A stretch of 63,491 nucleotides of DNA, counting the filler, from Octopus bimaculoides (taxonomy: Eukaryota): the NCBI RefSeq assembly GCF_001194135.2. It is 4 parts of 4 records of this genome, joined end to end, with 100 filler letters (N's around TTAATTAATTAA, not from the genome) between each part and the next. Parts side by side here need not be neighbours in the genome. Positions count along the whole stretch, not along the records: positions 32,456 to 60,344 come from NC_069009.1; 3 more parts are not named here. One strand, written 5' to 3'. The notes below the pieces were generated by a model, which was not told the origin of the DNA, ran no database searches, and saw only the letters and a list, made by a program, of their open reading frames with translations. The position numbers and the translations under genes were made by a program. This document shows, piece after piece, positions 37,779 through 50,809 of this stretch (positions are counted from its first letter, which is position 1; each line of letters opens with the position of its first letter).

Positions 37779-40680
37779 GTTTATATATTCCCAATATTCA
37801 TTGCAATACTATATTTCAATCAGTTTAATGTGTCTTATTGCTGGATATACACATACTACATAGAGTCATGTCTGCCTAGACTCTGTCACTTCTAAAGTTA
37901 TCCTATTGGCCACTGATACATGATAAATGCTTCAGTTCATCTGAAAACATTTTAATTCTGGCCATGCTGGAGTACAATATGCAGATTTTTAATTTCTAGA
38001 CATATACCGTGTGATTCTAATCTCTCATTTGTTTCTAATAACAAAATTTATACCTCTAAAATACATATTAACCTGTTTTTTTCCCCCTTTTTAATTATTT
38101 ATGTATTTTGAATATAATTCTCTTTTCTTCAATTATTATTTTCCCATTTCAATAATTTTTTAAATTTCAAAATTGTATTTTTATATATAAAAAGAACAAG
38201 AATATATACATATATTTAGAAACTGTAAGATCTATATGCACTTTGCCCTTTCACAATCGTCTACTTATTAGACAGGTGTTCTCTTAGACCTGGAAATTAA
38301 TACAAACCCAATAAAGGTAAAGAATAAATTTCCAGCGCTGAAGTATGTTTATATTAACAAAAGAAACTCTATGAATGCCATTATGTATGTCAAATGTTGG
38401 TTATCCTGTTTATGTACATAGGTAGCCAGCCATCTCTGTGAGTAAATAGCCAGCAAACCACACATATCTATGATTTTAAAAAAAAGGAAATTATCCTGCA
38501 CAAATCATCTCCCTTATCCAGATTGCTTAAATGTGATAACAGCTCCTTAATTTTTTCTACCACAACTTACAGTTTCTATAACAAATACATATATGCATAT
38601 ATATATATACATACATACATATANNNNNNNNNNNNNNNNNNNNNNNNNNNNNNNNNNNNNNNNNNNNNNNNNNNNNNNNNNNNNNNNNNNNNNNNNNNNN
38701 NNNNNNNNNNNNNNNNNNNNNNNNNNNNNNNNNNNNNNNNNNNNNNNNNNNNNNNNNNNNNNNNNNNNNNNNNNNNNNNNNNNNNNNNNNNNNNNNNNNN
38801 NNNNNNNNNNNNNNNNNNNNNNNNNNNNNNNNNNNNNNNNNNNNNNNNNNNNNNNNNNNNNNNNNNNNNNNNNNNNNNNNNNNNNNNNNNNNNNNNNNNN
38901 NNNNNNNNNNNNNNNNNNGTGTGTGTGTTTGTGTGTATGTATGTATGTATGTATATATATATGTATATTCTTGTTGCTCTTCATATGTATTGTATCTTTA
39001 TTATTATGTATGCTATGTTGTAATATTTTATTTCATTGAATACATTGTATATATTAATGTATGTATATATATTTATGTGTGTCTATGTGTTGTATATACA
39101 CATACACATGTACACACTTGGATTTATGCGCTGTACAGCAGAAACACCTAAACCACATGCCTAATTGTCTGTACTTCCTCTGATAAATAATAGCAATTGG
39201 CCTATACATTCTACGGGCCTATCAATCTGTCTGGTTACTTCAAGTTTCATAATATCTGGTTTTAACACTGAATATCAATCATCAAACATATATGAGATGC
39301 ATATCAAATGAAAAATTTATTTCTTTATTAATCTTTAAGACAAACTGAAAACTGTGGTTTAGTGCTTTTCAGCTTCCATTTGAAATTAGACTAGGAATAT
39401 TGTATTCAATCATTTTCTTTTGGATTCTATTGTGATGAGCAATTATTTCTATTTAGAAATGCAGTAATTTCACATGATAGTCATATTATTTGTAATATTA
39501 GTATTAAATTTGTCATTTGACATTTTGTTATATTCTATGTATATTTATTTTTGTATTTTGGAAGTTTTGTTGTTTTTGTCATTGTTGTTGTTATTGTTGT
39601 GATTGTTTTTTGTTGTTGTAGCTGTGTTTGTCATCGTTACAATGGAAAACCAAAATTAAAACCAAAACACTGTATATACCCAAGTACACAGACACATGTT
39701 CAGCTGTGCAATGAAATCATGCAATAACATTAAGACTACCAAATTAATAATAATAATAATAATAATAATAATTATAATAATTATAATAAAATTTTGCATT
39801 CTGCAGGCAGAACAAATACACTGATACTTCCCTTGATGCACACACACACACACACACACAAAGATATATATATATATATATGGATATATATATATATATA
39901 TATTCTGTCAGTTCACAATCTTGAAACAAGTGAACAAAATGCCTTCATTTGAAAGCAATAGAAAATGTCTGTAGTGGCCACTTTCAGCAGTGTTATAAGG
40001 GGCAGTGTTATATCTATGGAATCATTCAAGCATTCACATTATGTGCATAGCTGATACTCCTAGGTAGGGAGTTAAGGTTTCTTAACATCAGAAAACATAT
40101 TAGGAGGGTATTGGGAAATATCACAAGTAATGGTGTAATTAACATAAGGGGTGGGGTAAATATAATTGAATAGAAAATAGCTAATCTAACTGCTCAACAA
40201 CTAACTGAAATACTAATGCTTATTAATGCATGTTTATAAGGGTTGAGGTCAGTTATGGGCATAATTCTTGTGAATGGAAGGCTGACATTGATATTAATAC
40301 AAAACAACATTTGAAGATGGCCATAAGTGCATCAACAGTTTAGGTCTTTTGCCCAGACATTTCTATTTTGTAGGGATATTTCTCCCTACATATGGAGATT
40401 ATTCTTAGCTATGAATTCACAAAGTAAAATAGAAAACTATCTCCACAGCTCATATATATATATATATATATATATANNNNNNNNNNNNNNNNNNNNNNNN
40501 NNNNNNNNNNNNNNNNNNNNNNNNNNNNNNNNNNNNNNNNNNNNNNNNNNNNNNNNNNNNNNNNNNNNNNNNNNNNNNNNNNNNNNNNNNNNNNNNNNNN
40601 NNNNNNNNNNNNNNNNNNNNNNNNNNNNNNNNNNNNNNNNNNNNNNNNNNNNNNNNNNNNNNNNNNNNNNNNNNNNNNNN

Positions 40681-40718
<38 letters not shown>

Positions 40719-41441
40719 TATGAATAGTAGTAGTGATTTCAGAGTTTTGCCAAAGAAGACTCTTCATACATGCATAAATATATATTAAGATACAAAATGT
40801 TTGTACTGTGATGTTTGACTATAAATGTATGTGAATATATGTATATATGAATATATGTATCTATAATTATGTACCGTGCTTGTCATTAGAATTGTATATT
40901 TATTTATACTCAGAGTTAACTGTGTAATCTTTCTTTATATGTTTGTCTTAGTTGTTATTATTCATTTTATTTTTTTGCTTTATTACAATCTTTAAAAATT
41001 CACTTGTACAAATTTTCACATTTTTTCTTTGCTTTCTTTTATCATTCTTTCTCTGCCTGCCTTTCTCTCACTATCTTTCTCCCTGTCTCCTTCAAAAATT
41101 CCCCAACACAAAAATTTTTCTAAACAAAATTCCTTATCTTATTTTTTAAAAAAATCTTTTATTCAACATCAACAAATGAAATCAATTCCAACTCGTTTCA
41201 TCTAAAACTCAAAACTTATCAAATGTACAAAATATTTACTCCTCTTTAAACTTCCTTAAAAAATAACAACACAAAACTTTAAAATAAAATAATAATAATG
41301 ATAAAAATTATAATAATAATGATAACAATAAACTAAACTAAAATTAAAACCAACAAAACAAAATTATTACTCAACCGCTCAAAAAACTCCTCTTTCAATC
41401 TATCTGAAAAACCCCAAACCTTCCCATTCACAAAATTCTAG

Positions 41442-41549
41442 AAAGACGAAAAGAAGGGTACCCTTGAGGATCAGATTGTCCAGTGTAACCCAGTACTGGA
41501 GGCATATGGTAATGCCAAAACTACCCGTAACAACAACTCTTCCCGCTTC
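41442..41549 (+). CDS. Mhc: Myosin heavy chain switch-I exon, variant a (36 aa): [36 protein letters not shown]
   Basis: Acceptor ttctAG at 41440-41441 and donor GTAAGT at 41550. 108 nt, phase 0/0, with the myosin NNNSSRF switch-I motif. Confidence 0.96.
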
Positions 41550-41630
41550 GTAAGTACACAGTGATTGTGGTCCACCCAAGTGGATATGCCACACTAGCAA
41601 ACTGAAACTAATATGCAAGAAAAAAGAAGA

Positions 41631-41632
<2 letters not shown>

Positions 41633-41693
<61 letters not shown>

Positions 41694-41917
41694 TAATAAT
41701 AAATAATAATAATGATGGCGATGATGACAACAATGATAATAATAATAAGAAGAAGAATAACAACAATAATAATTAATTAATTAATTAATAATAATAATAA
41801 TCATAATAATAATAATAATAATAATAATAACCACAACAAATACAGCTGCCAAGACAATAACTCTGACCTTTTCCTATAATAATAACTCCCTCCTACAACA
41901 ACAACTATATCACCTCC

Positions 41918-41961
<44 letters not shown>

Positions 41962-42068
41962 TAATATTAATAATAATAAGGATGGTGATAATAACAAAAA
42001 TATTAATAATAATAATGATGATGATGGTAATAATACCAATAATAATAATAATAGTAATAATAATATTG

Positions 42069-42123
<55 letters not shown>

Positions 42124-42231
42124 CCACAGTGAGTACTACTACCATGAAAATAACTCCATTTCTCAATAATAACTCCACTTTTCAACAGCAATAATAACAA
42201 TAATACTGCCTCTATCAATAATAATAATAAT

Positions 42232-42279
<48 letters not shown>

Positions 42280-42384
42280 CACAACTGTGGATGGTAACCA
42301 CAGTTATATCTCTCAACTCAAAAATCTGAACCTCATAACATGTATCTACCCACAAACTGTGTTAACCAACCAAACAACAACAGC

Positions 42385-42416
<32 letters not shown>

Positions 42417-42425
42417 CAACTACTA
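41633..42425. repeat. Long compound (AAT)n/(AAC)n array between switch-I exons a and b
   Basis: Direct reading. Confidence 0.9.
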
Positions 42426-42500
42426 CTACTACTACAAACAGCAAATTGTATGATAAACTAATAATTCTCTATCAAAAGTAACCACTTTTTTTAAAACTAC

Positions 42501-42531
<31 letters not shown>

Positions 42532-43253
42532 CAACATACACACACATATGCATATTCTCTTTTAAAACTCTCTTCAAAACTGACAAAATATAAAATACCT
42601 GTAATTTATAACACTGCTAATATATTTGTGAAAGCATTACATGCATGTATGTATGCATACATGCAGGAACATGCATATATATTAGATATAGATGCAACAA
42701 TGTACTTGCAACTATTACATTTAATCAGAGACCATCTCTGACATTAAAAGCATGAAAAGACAAAGATAATATTAAGATTATGCAGAGTGTTAATTTACAC
42801 TCTTTTTCTTGCATCACTTGGAAAATATGAAGATAAGGAAACATGAACAATTATTAGTCATTTTCCAAGTTTATATTCTTGTTAAAGTTTACCATTTTAT
42901 ACATTTTTTATTACTTTATGAATTATATTACATATGTTTATCTCCTATATTCAGCCAGTGAAGATGTCACTCTCAAATTTGTCACTGAAAGATGACAAAG
43001 ATAGCTTTTGTAACTCAAGACTACATATATATACATTATATATATAAAAATACACGCACACACACCCACATATACACACACACGTTTCTGTGTATGTGTG
43101 ATAGTTGTAGTAGTAATAGCTATGTTCATCTATATTAAAATATAATTAGTGGTACACAGGGTATGAGAACACATGAAAAGGTATGATTCTTTTTGCATCT
43201 AAGATACATCAACTGAAAATAAATAATAATAACAAAAAATAATAAAATTAATG

Positions 43254-43311
<58 letters not shown>

Positions 43312-43332
43312 TTTCTTACAGATAACCTTGTA

Positions 43333-43371
<39 letters not shown>

Positions 43372-43710
43372 TGTGTGTCACTCACCTACCCCTCTCCCAT
43401 TCAACCTTATTTCCTTCTCTCTCTATCTTCCTCTCATTCCAATCCTTTTTATCAATCTCACTCTCTATTTCACTGTGTTATCAAATAAAAGAATGTTATC
43501 TCTATACATTGTCTAACCAAAATTTTCTCCTTTCTTTTCTTTCATTCTCTCTTTACACCCATCCCCTCCCTAATTTATTTCCTCTTTGGTGTTCCATAAA
43601 AATATTTTTTTAAACTATATCTTATGAAACCCTAAACTCTTAATACCAATATCAACAAATCTAAATACTAAAATAACTCACCCTCCAAAACTGTAATAAC
43701 CGAAATGTAG

Positions 43711-43803
43711 ACATCCTTGGAAGACCAAATTGTCCAAGCTAACCCAGTATTGGAAGCCTACGGAAACGCCAAGACTGTCCGTAATAACAACTCATCTAGA
43801 TTC
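43711..43803 (+). CDS. Mhc: Myosin heavy chain switch-I exon, variant b (31 aa): [31 protein letters not shown]
   Basis: Acceptor aatgtAG and donor GTAAGT at 43804. 93 nt, phase 0/0, intact frame. Confidence 0.96.
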
Positions 43804-44019
43804 GTAAGTACTTGACCAAAATCGTGGGCTAATGTCCTCAAAAAAAAAAAAAAGAAAAAAGAAAGAAATGGTGAATCATCTGCTCTTTTGAATTTTTTTT
43901 CTTGACAAACATGATTTGACCAATCAAGAAGTACTTGAAGTCAAAAACTTTGCAGATGAGAAATATTGGATAAAAATATTCAATAAATGAAAATATATAT
44001 ATAAATATTATGTTTGTGT

Positions 44020-44050
<31 letters not shown>

Positions 44051-44198
44051 TATATATATACATATATATATATATGTGTGTGTGTGCATGTATGTGGGTG
44101 TGTGTTTGTGTATATACATATATTTATGTATATATTTACAGAGGACCAAATGATAGACACAACTAAATAACAAAAATAATATTAGTAATAGTATTAAC

Positions 44199-44251
<53 letters not shown>

Positions 44252-45492
44252 TAATAATAACAATGATCATAACAATAATAATAACAAAAAATTAACAAAC
44301 AATAATAATAACAATAATAACAATAACAATTAAATACTAGCAAATCATCAATTTTTTAACCTGCCAAACTATTTTTTTCCCATTTATCTTTGTCTTCCTG
44401 TCATTTACGTGAAAAAAAACCCCCAAAATTTTTCATCCAATAATCTCTACATTAATCTAACCATTCTCTTTTCCTTTCTCTTTAGATCCTTTCTAGCCTA
44501 AACATATATATATATATATATATANNNNNNNNNNNNNNNNNNNNNNNNNNNNNNNNNNNNNNNNNNNNNNNNNNNNNNNNNNNNNNNNNNNNNNNNNNNN
44601 NNNNNNNNNNNNNNNNNNNNNNNNNNNNNNNNNNNNNNNNNNNNNNNNNNNNNNNNNNNNNNNNNNNNNNNNNNNNNNNNNNNNNNNNNNNNNNNNNNNN
44701 NNNNNNNNNNNNNNNNNNNNNNNNNNNNNNNNNNNNNNNNNNNNNNNNNNNNNNNNNNNNNNNNNNNNNNNNNNNNNNNNNNNNNNNNNNNNNNNNNNNN
44801 NNNNNNNNNNNNNNNNNNNNNNNNNNNNNNNNNNNNNNNNNNNNNNNNNNNNNNNNNNNNNNNNNNNNNNNNNNNNNNNNNNNNNNNNNNNNNNNNNNNN
44901 NNNNNNNNNNNNNNNNNNNNNNNNNNNNNNNNNNNNNNNNNNNNNNNNNNNNNNNNNNNNNNNNNNNNNNNNNNNNNNNNNNNNNNNNNNNNNNNNNNNN
45001 NNNNNNNNNNNNNNNNNNNNNNNNNNNNNNNNNNNNNNNNNNNNNNNNNNNNNNNNNNNNNNNNNNNNNNNNNNNNNNNNNNNNNNNNNNNNNNNNNNNN
45101 NNNNNNNNNNNNNNNNNNNNNNNNNNNNNNNNNNNNNNNNNNNNNNNNAATGATACAAATTCATATTTCTCTAAATAGTCATGTGACATGTTTCGAAGAG
45201 CTTCACTGAAAAGGAATAGCAATGCTCATTCCATAACCTCTACCCACCTTAGAAAAAAAAATCCCTTCAATCTCCTTAGATTTTCTGCTCCACAGATATT
45301 ACTGATGGCTGAACAGCACTTTTTTTTAACTAAATATTTTCCATTATAATTTTTCCCTGTCTAACATATTCTTCTCTTTTTCGTGTGATTTCCAAACCTT
45401 CACAAAAAAATTACCCTTCAAAAAACATCTTCCTTCGTAACTGATGAACCCTACAAAACTTACACACAAAACAATAACCGTCTACAAAACAG

Positions 45493-45585
45493 GGTTCTCT
45501 TGAGGACCAGATCATCCAAGCTAACCCGGTATTAGAGGCATATGGCAATGCCAAAACTGTCCGTAATAACAACTCGTCCAGATTT
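45493..45585 (+). CDS. Mhc: Myosin heavy chain switch-I exon, variant c (31 aa): [31 protein letters not shown]
   Basis: Acceptor aaacAG and donor GTAAGT at 45586. 93 nt, phase 0/0, intact frame. Confidence 0.95.
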
Positions 45586-46063: not shown

Positions 46064-48765
46064 CATCTATCTATCTATCTATCTTTCTAACTGTCTTTCT
46101 TTCTCTCTCTTTTGCTTTCTGTATTGATACATACACACACACACACACACACACACATAAATGCATAATCTTATAACTCCTGGATTTATACTCTTCTTAT
46201 CTCTCTAATATGATTCAAACAAGAAAGTAGTCTAAAAACCTTTTTAAAATCTAACACCAAAATAATACCCATTAACATAATATTTTAGTAAAGACTTATA
46301 GTCACTGTAGGAAATAATACCTGATTGTTTGAGATAATATCAAATAACAGCTATCAACAAGGAAGCCATTTCTTTAACCAAATAACTATGCCTGTTCCCA
46401 TTTAAGAAATATAAAGAAGACTTTTATCATTTCTAAATCAACATAAGAAGACATTTCATTTTGTCATCTTCTGAGTCCAATCGTTTGAAATACTGAATAG
46501 ATGAAAGTTGCCCAACTCCATCAAATTTCTGTTTCTCTGCTATTTTGGCATTCCATGACATAGCCTGAACAGAGGTGTTGTGCCTCATATTTATTATTAT
46601 ATATCTATAGCAAAATGGCTGCAGTCTTTAAATTCAGAATTCATTTGTGGATATCGTTTTCCACCAAAATATAACACACACACACACACACACACATATG
46701 CATGCAATTGGCATTCTGAATGGGGAAAAGAGACAGACAGAAAAAAGACATTAAAATGGAAGGGGAGGAGTGAGGATGGTTGGTGGTTTAGTTTATGGGA
46801 CTGACAGTTGTTTAAGTTATGCATGCATGCATATATCCATATAACAATGACCATTAAGATACAGACAGGTGGCAGGTTAGAATGTAGTCAAACATTCAGA
46901 ACTGTCATTGTATGCATATATACAATGTGCGCACATGCACACGCACACACACACACACAGCATGGAAGACAATCATAAATGAATTCTGTAATTAGTATTC
47001 CTTTAGCAGTTTTGGTATCATAGGATAGTAATGGTGCCACATTGAGATTTGAACCAGGCAACACAAAGGTTTTAATGAGAACAATCTGTCTTGCTGCATT
47101 AGCCATAAACACTAGTGGTTCTACAAATTGCATCTACCTGAGACAGCAAAGTGGCTTATATGTGGCTGCTCATATATATATATAGCAACTAAATTTCCTT
47201 GAAATCAATGTGTGCCATACTGAAAAACTCAGGAAAACATTTGATAATGCAGCCCGAGACACAAAATGCCTAAAATAAATATAAGCTGGTCAAAGCTTTG
47301 TATATAGATCTGTTTGACCAGAATTGAACTGGTGTTAAACAACAATAACTATAGCCACTACTAGATAATATAACCCCAGATATACTGTTTGAATAAGAGA
47401 TAAGGTGGTCAGCTGCAGCTGGAATGCTTTTTATCTTTTATTTAATCAAAATATTAGTAACAAAAGCAATAACAAATATTAAACTATTCAACAGACATTT
47501 AGAAGATGATGAAAATAAAAATAGTATCTGTAAGCAAGCAAAGCAACTCCCCAAATGATACTTTATGTAACATGTTATAACAAAGGAAAAAAGTTCTCAA
47601 CAACTCTAGTTAATGTTTTAAAAACTACACTGAAATTCATAATAATTAACAATTTTTATTAACAATGATTAAATATAAACTAACCATAATAATAACCGTA
47701 TTTCACTCCCCCTTCAAAAGATGAGTTTTTAATATATAAGTATTGAAATGTGTTTAAATCTTAAAGTATGCACTGTAACTACTATGAAGCAAGAAGTAAT
47801 TCAGCTGTAAATTTGTATTTTCTCTAGTGGCATTTACGTATAAATATATACACCCAAACGTATATACATACATATATATGCATATGTATTTATGTATATA
47901 TGTATAGATAGATATAGGAATAAATTTCACAGATATGAATTATGCTTATTATTACTCCAACTTATGTACATTTATATTTTCTCATCTCTGATTCAAATGA
48001 TTATGTTGAAGTTTCCACTGTGCTGAAGAAGCCTAACAAGAAATATGCCTTCAACATGTATACATGGTCTACTACACTTGTTGGGAAGGCTTAAAACCAG
48101 ATAAATGAATACTTTATAGCTAGTTGTATTTATCTTTCAATGCTTACAATGTTAAATATGTTAAAACTAACTTAACTATCTTTAAAAAAAAAACTTTTTT
48201 ATTATCAAATTTATAATGTAACACAGTGTTGATATGTTTCAGTAAATTTCTGAACATAATGACGAATTTTAAAAAATTTAATAAAACACCAAACGTCAGT
48301 CATAATTAATCAGGCTGTTTGCAAAAATAACTGAACAAAACAATATTCTTTCATAAAATTCAGGTAGAATGTAATTAAATAATCAAAATACTTTAAACAT
48401 TAGAGATTTCTTGTTATCATAAGGCAGATTAGTGCTAAACAAGGTAAATTCCTTCTCAGCCACAATCTTAATAAATAACAATAACAATTTATAGCAAATA
48501 ATAAATAACCACAGTAGACACCTTTTATCTAACTTGCATGCTACACTTTACCTTCCCACAAAGACCTTCACTACTTAATCACGTAATTTGTATCTTTTAA
48601 CATTTTATTTTTGTGTTTTTTCTTTGAAAACGTATATATTTGTATATATATACGTATACATGGCCAAAGATTTTGATTACAAAGAGCTCTTGAAAAATGT
48701 ATCTTTTCGTTTTTTTACAAACAATAAAACTTGATTGATATATGTTAAGAAACATATATCATACT

Positions 48766-48820
<55 letters not shown>

Positions 48821-50809
48821 NNNNNNNNNNNNNNNNNNNNNNNNNNNNNNNNNNNNNNNNNNNNNNNNNNNNNNNNNNNNNNNNNNNNNNNNNNNNNNNN
48901 NNNNNNNNNNNNNNNNNNNNNNNNNNNNNNNNNNNNNNNNNNNNNNNNNNNNNNNNNNNNNNNNNNNNNNNNNNNNNNNNNNNNNNNNNNNNNNNNNNNN
49001 NNNNNNNNNNNNNNNNNNNNNNNNNNNNNNNNNNNNNNNNNNNNNNNNNNNNNNNNNNNNNNNNNNNNNNNNNNNNNNNNNNNNNNNNNNNNNNNNNNNN
49101 NNNNNNNNNNNNNNNNNNNNNNNNNNNNNNNNNNNNNNNNNNNNNNNNNNNNNNNNNNNNNNNNNNNNNNNNNNNNNNNNNNNNNNNNNNNNNNNNNNNN
49201 NNNNNNNNNNNNNNNNNNNNNNNNNNNNNNNNNNNNNNNNNNNNNNNNNNNNNNNNNNNNNNNNNNNNNNNNNNNNNNNNNNNNNNNNNNNNNNNNNNNN
49301 NNNNNNNNNNNNNNNNNNNNNNNNNNNNNNNNNNNNNNNNNNNNNNNNNNNNNNNNNNNNNNNNNNNNNNNNNNNNNNNNNNNNNNNNNNNNNNNNNNNN
49401 NNNNNNNNNNNNNNNNNNNNNNNNNNNNNNNNTATATATATCTGTAAACTATATATTTAATATTATTAATTAGTCTTTTAGGTAATTCCAAGACTTGGTA
49501 ATAAACCTGTTTTTTTACATTAAAAAATCATCAGACCCAATGTTTTAAATATCCTGCCTACTCCCTAATGTAAAATCATTCATCAGCAACAACGTCAAAC
49601 AATAACAATATTAATATTAATATTAATAATAATATACCAATAATTATAATAACAGTAATAAAAAATATAAAAATGATGATGATGATGATTTAACAAAAAT
49701 TTCCTCGAATTGTACAAATCAACCTCATCTGTTTTATTTTGAATTTCACATATAAAGTACAATTAATTAACTAATCAAAAGTAATAACCTAAATGACCAA
49801 ATAATTACTAAGATTTATCGAGAAATTAACAGACTGAAAAACAATGAATAATGATTTTAAAAAATGAATTACTGGTTAATACATAATATGTATATATATA
49901 TTTACATGCATATATGTGATATATACTCAAATATATTTATATATATATATGTATTATATATATATTAATTAGTAATTAATTAACTTCCCCTCCCACTTTG
50001 AATTTTTCTTATTGAGACCTTGATAACGATGGTAAATTGTTATCAAACATATTGAACAAAAAAATCAAATCACATTTGACTGAATATCTTTAATAAATGT
50101 TTTGAAAAAATATTTATTTAAATATTTTTTCAAATACTTAATATTAAAATAAAATAGATTAACTCATTTAAATTAACCAATCAAATGAAAATATTAATCA
50201 ACACTTGATTTTTATTACAAATAAATTAACTAATTCATGAAAAAATAATTTTTCTATATTAAATGAAAATATTTATTAAACAAATGAATTAACATCTTAC
50301 TGTAATATTTTTTAATTAATCAATTTGATGAAAATTATTTTAGAAAATAGATTAACATTTTATTTAGTAATGTTTTTTTATTAAATTAACCAATTAGATA
50401 CAAATAAACCATTTTTTATGAATTAACAATTGATGTAATATTTAATGATTAACCAACTAGATTATATAATATAAAAATATAAATTAACATTTTATTTAAT
50501 TTTTTAAACTACTTAACTAATTAGACGAATATATTTTTTTCTAAATTAAAATATAAATATAAATAAATAGTACAAGAAAATATAGGCACCTACATGAAGA
50601 ATGATTGTTGGTTTTTAACTGACAACCAAAGCCATATATTTGTATAGGCTTGTGGGTTAGTGTGGGAGAGAGGGAAAACATTTGATTTGATTGACACCAC
50701 TCTTTTACTGGTAAGAATGCATTTTACAGAACCTGAAATAGTGAAGGTAAAAAAAATTAGAACATATTCTGTTTTTTTTTTTCCTGTTTCTGATCTATTA
50801 TGAGACTCA

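Follow-up and report, generated by a model that had tools for sequence, protein, structure and literature searches.

How is one exon chosen from a row of three similar ones in a muscle myosin heavy chain gene? In molluscan myosins, variants of loop-1 and switch-1 tune speed as well as ADP release, and we know of no mechanism, outside insects, by which a choice among several in-frame variants is made. The question is raised by a window of 63,491 nucleotides, filler included (the whole stretch of DNA that was analysed), from Octopus bimaculoides (assembly GCF_001194135.2), of which positions 32,456 to 60,344, referred to below as the piece, come from NC_069009.1. On its + strand the piece carries a section of a muscle myosin heavy chain gene with three mutually exclusive cluster-3 exons (3a, 3b and 3c), which code for the end of loop-1 to switch-1, and the P-loop exon joins to one of the three.

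32757..32868, + strand: P-loop exon (cluster-2 position), translating to GESGAGKTESTKKVIMYFAEVAATQDRKREKADGTRA; donor GTAAGT; AG-free zone of just 7/23 nt
41442-41549, + strand: alternative exon 3a, 108 nt, phase 0-0, 36 residues; donor GTAAGT
43711-43803, + strand: alternative exon 3b, 93 nt, phase 0-0, 31 residues; AG/GTAAGT
44525-45148, no strand: assembly gap, wholly within the intron between 3b and 3c, touching no feature
45493-45585, + strand: alternative exon 3c, 93 nt, phase 0-0, 31 residues
52897..52960, + strand: next constitutive exon (GKFIRIHFGTQGKIAGADIET), with an ordinary U-rich acceptor and an AG-free zone of 80 nt

The three exons are homologous, stand in tandem with equal phase and are flanked by the P-loop exon upstream and the GKFIRIHF exon downstream, which is the arrangement of a cluster-3. 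Nucleotide identity among them is 72-80%, and every copy has AG/GTAAGT and phase 0-0. Purifying selection acts on them, the codon differences between 3b and 3c being 16 synonymous and 2 non-synonymous. Exon 3a codes for a peptide whose residues are identical, 36/36, with those of isoform A of squid myosin (PDB 3i5f), and the exon's acceptor is therefore the first AG (41440-41441). The assembly gap starts 721 nt past exon 3b and ends 344 nt ahead of exon 3c, and no feature or reading frame crosses it. In the readable sequence, tblastn and blastn gave only these three copies and no fourth cluster-3 variant. No cephalopod protein came up in protein searches, where Lottia and Patella gave the best molluscan matches; the exact look-up of three window ORFs gave no match, and the contigs from a metagenome scan were all cDNA-like, lacking introns, and no more than 81% identical. 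Mutually exclusive cluster-3 exons are known for metazoan muscle Mhc genes, including those of scallop, oyster, Aplysia and Lottia (Kollmar and Hatje, 2014; PMC3912159), and isoforms A and B have been reported from squid cDNAs and six isoforms from O. bimaculoides (cited in PMC3912159, PMC4757648). The exon set itself was thus already known; for the layout of its acceptors, given below, no paper on molluscan myosin was found, in line with the original prediction.

What sets the three exons apart is the sequence ahead of them, which lacks the dinucleotide AG over long distances.

40952-41439, + strand: AG-free zone before 3a, 488 nt, G 2.9%, the longest of 958 AG-free runs in the piece, 17% tandem repeat
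43322..43489, + strand: second AG-free run, upstream of zone b, 168 nt, with a lone AG at 43490 between the two
43492-43708, + strand: AG-free zone before 3b, 217 nt, G 4.1%, without tandem repeat
45317-45490, + strand: AG-free zone before 3c, 174 nt, G 4.6%, without tandem repeat

On recount, the three stretches reported in the original prediction proved exact to the nucleotide. The 387 nt before 3b hold one AG (G 4.1%), and zone c begins 168 nt to the right of the assembly gap. Compared among acceptors, the AG-free zones measure 490, 219 and 176 nt for 3a, 3b and 3c vs 23-122 nt at the ten other acceptors in the piece, two constitutive ones reaching 122 nt, so that the cluster-3 acceptors are the top 3 of 13 (chance 1/286), these 13 being the only octopus background. 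All three zones reach the length of at least 100-150 nt by which AG-exclusion zones were defined (Gooding et al., 2006), a length that is rare in human introns, 1.2% of which have a zone of at least 100 nt and 0.25% one of at least 150 nt (PMC1431707).

Could such runs be a compositional by-product without function, which AT-rich, sense-strand G-poor, (AAT)n-filled octopus introns would give in any case? Of the AG-free runs in the piece, 36 do reach 100 nt and 14 reach 150 nt, and two non-repeat runs of 184-193 nt lie in AT-rich intron without any exon downstream; besides, zone a is in part degenerate (AAT)n, and constitutive zones are not all short. The low G content also accounts for a good part of the effect, since local composition alone gives zones b and c a chance of about 0.05-0.06 each of being free of AG. 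Against this explanation, all three alternative acceptors, and no other acceptor, stand at the ends of such runs, and three of the five longest non-repeat runs among the 958 end exactly at the acceptors of 3a, 3b and 3c. Mononucleotide shuffles of 340-750-nt windows gave P<5e-5, 0.001 and 0.002 for the AG-free lengths. In fixed 500-nt windows before a and b, A precedes 3 of 37 G, a share that is 31% over the piece (P about 1e-3 to 1e-4). GA and GT occur there as often as expected; AG is depleted beyond what low G accounts for. G content also steps sharply, from 12-14% to 3-5%, right at the zone borders (from 13.7% to 2.9% at the 5′ border of zone a), and the same ranking of acceptors is found in Lottia and Patella and is lost in a single-copy paralog. 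We consider the by-product explanation unlikely; the AG-exclusion zones are real and tied specifically to the three alternative exons.

Other origins of the zones were considered as well. A microsatellite or tandem-repeat origin was rejected, such repeats making up 17% of zone a and 0% of both b and c, as was a transposon or other repeat origin, there being no further copies in the piece; Rfam gave no match to a structured RNA family in the zones. The introns upstream of 3a, 3b and 3c have no alignable homology among them and the exons are near synonymous saturation, which suggests that the AG-free state has been kept up rather than inherited.

A second peculiarity of the three acceptors is the place of their pyrimidines.

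41012-41092, + strand: pyrimidine tract before 3a, 81 nt, 88% Y, 349-429 nt upstream of the exon, score 43
43380..43586, + strand: pyrimidine-rich region before 3b, 77% Y, spanning CTAAC, 124-330 nt upstream, score 42.6
43510..43517, + strand: TGTCTAAC, candidate distant branch site of 3b, A at 43516, 195 nt ahead of the exon
45336..45381, + strand: pyrimidine tract before 3c, surrounding CTAAC, 111-156 nt upstream of the exon, score 15.7
45358..45365, + strand: TGTCTAAC, candidate distant branch site of 3c, A at 45364, 129 nt ahead of the exon

The strongest tracts of these exons lie at -111 to -429, away from the AG. The long tract that had been announced before variant a is indeed there; its score is twice that of the best tract at any constitutive acceptor, and it starts with TTTTCAC, a yUnAy branch candidate. 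Among all acceptors, UCUU/CUCU density peaks in the region before 3b (7.7 per 100 nt), whose copy of TGTCTAAC is the best pairing of branch and pyrimidine tract in zone b, with 83% Y over the next 30 nt; the candidate GTCTAAC at -129 of 3c is followed by 73% Y over the same length. In zones b and c the pyrimidine tract comes directly after GTCTAAC, which is placed 20-45 nt in from the 5′ border. Zone a has no CTAAC anywhere, only TTCAC-type candidates ahead of the 81-nt tract. The elements follow one another as a distant branch point would require, from the boundary AG through a branch-like motif and pyrimidine tract to an AG-free spacer and finally the acceptor, an order that is clearest in b and c. 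The constitutive acceptors are built otherwise: nine downstream exons carry motifs of the CTAAT/CTRAY type about -30 to -45, then U-rich tracts, while at 3a, 3b and 3c there is neither a CTRAY at -20 to -45 nor a U-rich tract. Over the last 40 nt, T makes up 15-25% and A 38-52% ahead of the three variants, vs T 40-52% at the other ten acceptors, which agrees with the earlier description of A/C-rich flanks for the variants and U-rich ones for constitutive exons.

Read together, these features are consistent with the use of the distant-branch-point type of 3′ splice site by exons 3a, 3b and 3c, an explanation that we take as the best one and to which, judging from sequence, we give about even chances. 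U2AF and the U2 snRNP would assemble on a branch-like motif and strong pyrimidine tract about 110-430 nt upstream of the exon, the motif being GTCTAAC for b and c and probably the TTCAC ahead of the 81-nt tract for a. The second splicing step would then pick the first downstream AG, that is, the acceptor of the exon, across a spacer of 100-350 nt that is rich in A/C, almost devoid of G and essentially without structure, and that selection would have purged of AG. We propose that the three acceptors are intrinsically weak or slow, because their pyrimidine tract is uncoupled from the AG, and that tract and spacer are likely landing sites for factors setting the a:b:c ratio, candidates being proteins that bind CU-rich or CA-rich RNA. 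Counting against this model, a branch about 425 nt from acceptor a would be at the extreme of known cases. Regulation of the cassette, as was originally suggested, is a possibility only; published work reported every isoform from each muscle sampled (PMC4757648).

The distant branch point has one serious competitor, in which the three exons have weak proximal 3′ splice sites, branching occurs at -31 to -49 without a pyrimidine tract, and activators bind the A/C-rich sequence; the upstream tracts would then be silencer or enhancer platforms, e.g., for PTB-like proteins, and AG would have been purged only as a dangerous cryptic acceptor downstream of a strong tract. Candidates for such a branch are TACTAAA (-40) and CTCAC (-31) for exon b and CTTAC (-31) and CTGAT (-49) for exon c, so proximal branching is possible at b and c. 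The A/C-rich last 40 nt, the peak of UCUU/CUCU density at exon b and the status of squid isoform B as a minor product (5-10%; PMC4757648), as weak sites predict, also fit this reading. However, exon a has no CTRAY there but only a TTCAC at -12, which is too close, and a proximal branch alone needs no AG exclusion 130-450 nt further upstream. Moreover, because the argument from AG purging already grants that the distal unit of tract and branch can support splicing, proximal branching merges with the main explanation. We regard it as a lesser possibility, though the one to be taken most seriously among the alternatives. The distant branch points of the original prediction accordingly stand in part, with a matching layout that is clearest for b and c, and with the proximal candidates of b and c and the lack of CTAAC in zone a on the other side.

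The variants also share short motifs, which bear on a different mechanism, that of competing RNA structures, known from insect Dscam1, 14-3-3xi and Mhc.

41373..41377, + strand: AACCG, 69 nt before acceptor a
43695..43702, + strand: AATAACCG, 9-16 nt before acceptor b
45473..45480, + strand: AATAACCG, 13-20 nt before acceptor c

Here a docking site would pair with a selector beside each variant, e.g., an element containing AACCG, and the G-poor spacer would merely keep the selector single-stranded. AACCG also occurs at 43698 (b) and 45476 (c), and AATAACCG has three copies vs 0.06 expected, all in the cluster region, though it is a post hoc pick among 65,536 possible words; its third copy, at 47691, has nothing exon-like after it (tblastn and blastn of the readable sequence). 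Selector sequences can, in addition, be copied by tandem exon duplication (PMC6071210). But the complement CGGTT occurs just once, inside exon E9, with none in the cluster introns, and wobble variants of the complement are scattered and weak. A duplex scan limited to 2 kb of candidate docking region (the 1 kb that follows the P-loop exon and the 1 kb ahead of E4), with the flanks of each variant as the other partner, did not rise above the reversed-sequence control, save for microsatellite pairing, and the zones have the weakest predicted folding among the acceptor regions of the gene. We judge this mechanism highly improbable. The words TGTCTAAC and AACCG are present at the positions originally given, but their sharing is within chance: TGTCTAAC has a third copy at 54062, 6- to 8-mers common to the zones are at or below dinucleotide-shuffle expectation, G-containing 8-mers common to b and c have P about 0.11, and AACCG in all three zones has P about 0.05, both by dinucleotide shuffle and the latter not above chance.

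Relatives carry a smaller version of the octopus layout at the homologous exons, and a single-copy exon lacks it. The cluster-3 AG-free zones measure 154/85/85 nt in Lottia, vs 13-51 nt at the other acceptors of the gene, and 66/79 nt in Patella, vs 22-66 nt; they are the longest in their genes, yet much shorter than in octopus, so that the parallel in these two gastropods is the weaker one. Lottia exon 3-1 has CTAAT, a tract and a C/A-rich spacer, as in octopus, while a Lottia paralog with a single-copy exon at the cluster-3 position has a 26-nt, U-rich zone, and the other alternative-exon clusters of Lottia have short zones (13-44 nt). A reading in which gastropods lack the pattern, based on Patella alone, was dropped after all acceptors were ranked and Lottia Mhc was added. 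It is conceivable, though we find it rather doubtful, that the design of the cluster-3 acceptors, in which a G-poor, unstructured spacer free of AG parts branch and tract from the acceptor AG, predates the cephalopod-gastropod split, that the octopus spacer was stretched to 100-350 nt, and that the spacer sets the isoform ratio; the branch-to-acceptor distance, up to about 430 nt, would then be among the longest known. More speculatively, the scarcity of G may keep the spacer single-stranded, perhaps shielding it from ADAR editing of AA to AI, and AI is read as AG. If the distant-branch-point layout is real, it offers a concrete, mutable cis-element for isoform choice in cephalopod muscle (CTAAC, pyrimidine tract and AG-free spacer), and the graded series from Patella through Lottia to octopus would show how the architecture scales with intron expansion. 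Gene predictors that expect a branch site and pyrimidine tract beside the AG would give the acceptors of 3a, 3b and 3c poor scores.

Among known systems, the tandem arrays of homologous, mutually exclusive exons in Dscam1, 14-3-3xi and insect Mhc (PMC6071210, PMC4691838) resemble the octopus cluster, which differs in that the search for a docking site able to pair with a shared element gave none and the acceptor-side regions are predicted to be unstructured. The metazoan Mhc cluster-3 (PMC3912159) has the same position between the P-loop and GKFIRIHF exons and exons of 93-108 nt in phase 0-0; that survey covers exon structure only, not 3′ splice-site architecture, and octopus has three variants where two are known from squid cDNA. 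Tpm1 exons 2/3 and OGDH exons 4a/4b (PMC7969005) are likewise mutually exclusive exons with distant branch points, putative ones in octopus, but there the branch point is so near the 5′ splice site belonging to the upstream exon that joining the two exons is blocked. The candidate branch points of octopus lie about 1,966 and about 1,560 nt (the latter including an estimated gap length) from the donor of the upstream variant, and at about 1.6-2.0 kb steric mutual exclusion is ruled out, so that the tropomyosin analogy drawn at the outset fails on mechanism. Policing by frame shift and NMD is inapplicable too, because all variants are multiples of 3 nt; mutual exclusivity itself is unexplained by the distant-branch-point layout. 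The closest likeness is to the class defined by Gooding et al. (2006; PMC1431707) on Tpm1 exon 3 (rat/human alpha-tropomyosin), the alpha-actinin SM exon and PTB exon 11. The vertebrate exons have zones above 150 nt with an AG-free spacer between tract and acceptor, are alternative, and are mutually exclusive in Tpm1 and actinin; the tracts of PTB-regulated exons, moreover, are rich in UCUU/CUCU, all as in octopus. In human ones a branch-like motif with an adjacent pyrimidine tract stands at the 5′ end of the zone (PMC1431707), where octopus has the candidate GTCTAAC in b and c and TTCAC-type candidates in a. Unlike that class, the octopus branch points are only predicted, its spacer is A/C-rich and almost G-free where the vertebrate one carries UGC/PTB clusters, its zone a, at 490 nt, is longer than the top human cases quoted (381-438 nt), and three paralogous exons in a row have the layout, in the phylum Mollusca; if the distant-branch-point explanation is true, a rare vertebrate splice-site architecture extends to molluscs.

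The readable sequence of 32456-60344 (hereafter, the piece) covers part of a + strand gene for muscle myosin heavy chain. Thirteen exons were placed using translation and splice sites, and an AG acceptor and a GTAAGT-like donor were present at 13 of 13.

Exons of the piece, placed by translation and splice sites
32757-32868, + strand, P-loop exon
41442-41549, + strand, exon 3a (108 nt, phase 0-0)
43711-43803, + strand, exon 3b (93 nt, phase 0-0)
45493-45585, + strand, exon 3c (93 nt, phase 0-0)
52897 to 60244, + strand, nine single-copy exons, E4 to E12

Exons 3a, 3b and 3c encode the end of loop 1 through switch 1 and correspond to what Kollmar & Hatje (PMC3912159) class as "cluster-3" among mutually exclusive exons. 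The 3a peptide is identical to squid myosin isoform A (PDB 3i5f) at 36 of 36 residues, five extra N-terminal residues (KDEKK) included, and the first AG (41440-41441) is therefore the 3a acceptor. Four AGs (41440, 41444, 41452 and 41455) fall within 17 nt at the start of 3a (41440-41456); since splicing at 41455 would leave 93 nt of exon, in register with 3b and 3c, alternative acceptor use is conceivable, with a difference of 5 residues in the length of loop 1. Codon differences between 3b and 3c are 16 synonymous and 2 non-synonymous, which identifies them as old duplicates under purifying selection and rules out pseudo-exons. The readable sequence of the piece holds three copies only, with no fourth. 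The P-loop exon peptide, …TESTKKVIMYFAEVAATQDRKREKADGTRA, is markedly unlike that of squid isoform A, …TENTKKVIQYFALVAASLAGKKDKKEEEKK, and this exon probably belongs to a cluster-2 set of alternatives, its partner(s) lying upstream of the piece.

The gap at 44525-45148 lies wholly inside the intron between 3b and 3c, 721 nt past 3b and 344 nt ahead of 3c; zone c, the AG-free stretch before 3c, starts 168 nt to its right. No reading frame or claimed feature spans it, and exon order, strand and phase agree across it. On the left it is bordered by a (TA)n run, a typical cause of assembly gaps, and exact look-ups of three ORFs of the window found no other assembly to bridge it. A hidden extra variant may lie in this gap or in that at 48821-49432. 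Two 10-N gaps, 55111-55120 and 59856-59865, each lie between exact duplicates, 74 nt and 150 nt long respectively (regions 55037-55194 and 59706-60015), almost certainly assembly artefacts, and the introns holding them are truly shorter than shown. Large (AAT)n microsatellites fill the introns around the variants (41631-42278, 43222-43309, 44166-44330 and 51100-51650), on the sense strand always as AAT and never as ATT, and a degenerate (AAT)n copy lies at 41283-41331, within zone a. In the intron before E4, 52400-52660 is GC-rich (53% GC), holds 15 of the 136 CpG of the piece, whose overall CpG O/E is 0.25, and looks like an inserted element.

The main finding concerns the introns ahead of the three variants, for which the original prediction gave AG-free zones whose coordinates were correct in every case. 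Measured to the exon, zones a, b and c are AG-free for 490, 219 and 176 nt, and the ten other acceptors have 23, 80, 23, 59, 122, 40, 43, 122, 91 and 80 nt, so that the alternative exons are the top three among 13 acceptors (1/286). The P-loop acceptor, which is G-rich and has a zone of just 7/23 nt, does not share the long-zone design. Among the 958 AG-free runs of the piece (median 13 nt), zone a ranks first by far, b fourth and c ninth, the other long runs being mostly microsatellites. Tandem repeats are absent from zones b and c and make up 17% of zone a; once they are removed, three of the five longest runs stop exactly at the three alternative acceptors. The other two, 38000-38192 (193 nt) and 50158-50341 (184 nt), are non-repetitive, very AT-rich, with about 4% G, and no recognisable exon follows them; therefore, AG-free runs of about 190 nt can come from composition alone.

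This bears on the possibility that the zones are a pure compositional by-product. G amounts to 12-14% just outside the zones and drops abruptly to 2.9-4.6% within, and it is 3.4-4.0% in the 500 nt ahead of a and b and 11-18% ahead of constitutive acceptors. AG depletion is explained largely, but not entirely, by this low G. Of the 37 G in fixed 500-nt windows ahead of a and b, only 3 have an A before them, a share that stands at 31% for the whole piece and at 32% upstream of constitutive exons; the AG deficit in these windows has a binomial P of ~1e-3 to 1e-4, and GA and GT match expectation there. Mononucleotide shuffles of 340-750-nt windows gave P<5e-5, 0.001 and 0.002 for zones a, b and c. 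Chance does not explain the coincidence of long runs with all three alternative acceptors, and we regard a purely compositional origin as improbable.

The splice signals also differ between the two kinds of exon, much as had been anticipated. At constitutive acceptors an ordinary U-rich tract runs up to the AG, preceded by a CTAAT, CTGAC or TTAAT-type motif at about -30 to -45. The sequence next to the alternative acceptors is indeed A/C-rich rather than U-rich (last 40 nt: T 15-25%, A 38-52%; T 40-52% at the other ten acceptors), no CTRAY motif occurs at -20 to -45 of a, b or c, and their strongest pyrimidine tracts sit far upstream, those of a and b scoring twice any constitutive tract.

Pyrimidine tracts of the alternative exons, located by tract scoring
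41012-41092 (-429 to -349), + strand, tract of exon a, 81 nt, 88% Y
43380-43586 (-330 to -124), + strand, tract of exon b
45336-45381 (-156 to -111), + strand, tract of exon c

Zones b and c each have GTCTAAC 20-45 nt in from the 5' border, with a pyrimidine tract directly after it. No CTAAC occurs anywhere for exon a, whose sole candidates are the TTCAC-type motifs heading its tract. Proximal candidates of b (TACTAAA at -40, CTCAC at -31) and c (CTTAC at -31, CTGAT at -49) count against a simple distant-branch reading. They leave weak proximal 3' splice sites dependent on activators as a possible, if rather doubtful, account. Competing RNA structures seem very improbable: predicted folds of the 170 nt upstream are weakest at the three alternative exons (-1.8, -5.9 and -6.9 kcal/mol; -7.7 to -27.7 kcal/mol at the other acceptors), and a scan of 2 kb of candidate docking sequence found no docking/selector pairing.

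The motifs proposed as shared, the CTAAC-containing TGTCTAAC (43510 and 45358) and the AACCG-containing AATAACCG (43695 and 45473), are present as claimed, but their sharing is not above chance. Apart from them the upstream introns of a, b and c are unalignable, and the shared k-mer count is at or under dinucleotide-shuffle expectation (P ~0.11 for G-containing 8-mers common to b and c; P ~0.05 for a G-containing 5-mer that the three zones share within their last 75 nt). AATAACCG occurs 3 times in the piece against 0.06 expected (first-order model; CpG O/E 0.25), a post hoc pick among 65,536 words, and no exon follows its third copy (47691, beside CTAAC). These motifs are leads, not evidence. 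About 2.2 kb past exon 3c, a distance resembling that between the variants, a 109-nt AG-free run (47610-47718) has CTAAC and AATAACCGT at its end (47680-47698), separated by 11 nt; it is not followed by any myosin-like exon, and the element could be what remains of a lost fourth variant or could be due to chance.

Protein searches and a metagenome scan found no cephalopod relative, and the comparison was made with two gastropod Mhc loci: Patella vulgata (L001), with two cluster-2 and two cluster-3 variants, and Lottia gigantea (L083), with two cluster-2, three cluster-3 and two cluster-5 variants. Lottia cluster-3 zones are 154, 85 and 85 nt versus 13-51 nt at nine other acceptors (top 3 of 12), and those of Patella 66 and 79 nt versus 22-66 nt elsewhere. 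The other Lottia alternative clusters are short (cluster-2, 44 nt; cluster-5, 13 and 19 nt), and in the Lottia paralog L002, where the exon is single-copy, the zone is 26 nt and U-rich. In three molluscs, therefore, an extended zone accompanies the alternative status of the cluster-3 exon, with octopus the extreme case; a reading from Patella alone, "not conserved", was overturned by the Patella ranking and the Lottia data. Judged from its sequence, Lottia exon 3-1 is the octopus layout in miniature, its boundary AG being followed by CTAAT (about -147), then a pyrimidine tract (-133 to -109) and a C/A-rich spacer (last 40 nt: T 15%, C 50%, A 35%, G 0%). In exons 3-2 and 3-3 a TTAAC/TTAAT motif at about -60 to -66 precedes a tract, and ~20 nt of spacer come after the tract. 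The three Lottia variants lie at 11797-13034 of L083, the first and second only 232 nt apart. CpG in short tract-AG spacers such as gaatgcaacccgaaaatccag (Lottia 3-3) and cccccgaatgctcctgtctatacag (Patella 3-2, L001 ~21214-21238) recalls the CCG of octopus AACCG.

The best-supported reading, to which we give about an even chance, is that the spliceosome would assemble at a branch site and pyrimidine tract far upstream, the first AG downstream would be taken as acceptor, and selection would keep the spacer AG-free; here we infer the branch positions, with candidates at about 43516 for b, 45364 for c and near 41000-41020 for a, the first-AG rule at such distances and any binding protein. Since the three introns have diverged past alignment, the exons are near synonymous saturation and neutral sequence of the locus has ~4 AG per 100 nt, the AG-free state appears to be maintained, not inherited. 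The distant-branch hypothesis is well-founded and testable, but its basis is sequence from one locus, with 13 acceptors in octopus and two gastropod species. This layout does not explain mutual exclusivity. Frame-based policing is ruled out because all variants are multiples of three. Squid isoform A amounts to 90-95%, and in O. bimaculoides all six isoforms occur in every muscle sampled (PMC4757648); therefore tissue-specific regulation, as "regulated" exons would have it, is not established, and the element may set the isoform ratio rather than act as a switch.

The cluster-3 exons were already known in scallops, oyster, Aplysia, Lottia and squid isoforms A and B (PMC3912159), Capitella has cluster-3 variants as well, and the architecture is of the distant-branch-point, AG-exclusion-zone kind, itself known. 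In tropomyosin and OGDH mutual exclusion is steric (PMC7969005), whereas the octopus candidate branch points lie ~1.6-2.0 kb from the upstream variant's donor, too far for that mechanism to apply. The arrangement of GTCTAAC and tract in b and c matches what Gooding et al. (PMC1431707) describe for human exons whose zones reach 150 nt or more, with a branch motif near the 5' end of the zone and the tract after it. No description of such a layout was found in the literature for molluscan or cephalopod myosin; if confirmed, it would extend this kind to a new phylum, at unusually long distances and in a three-fold repeat.
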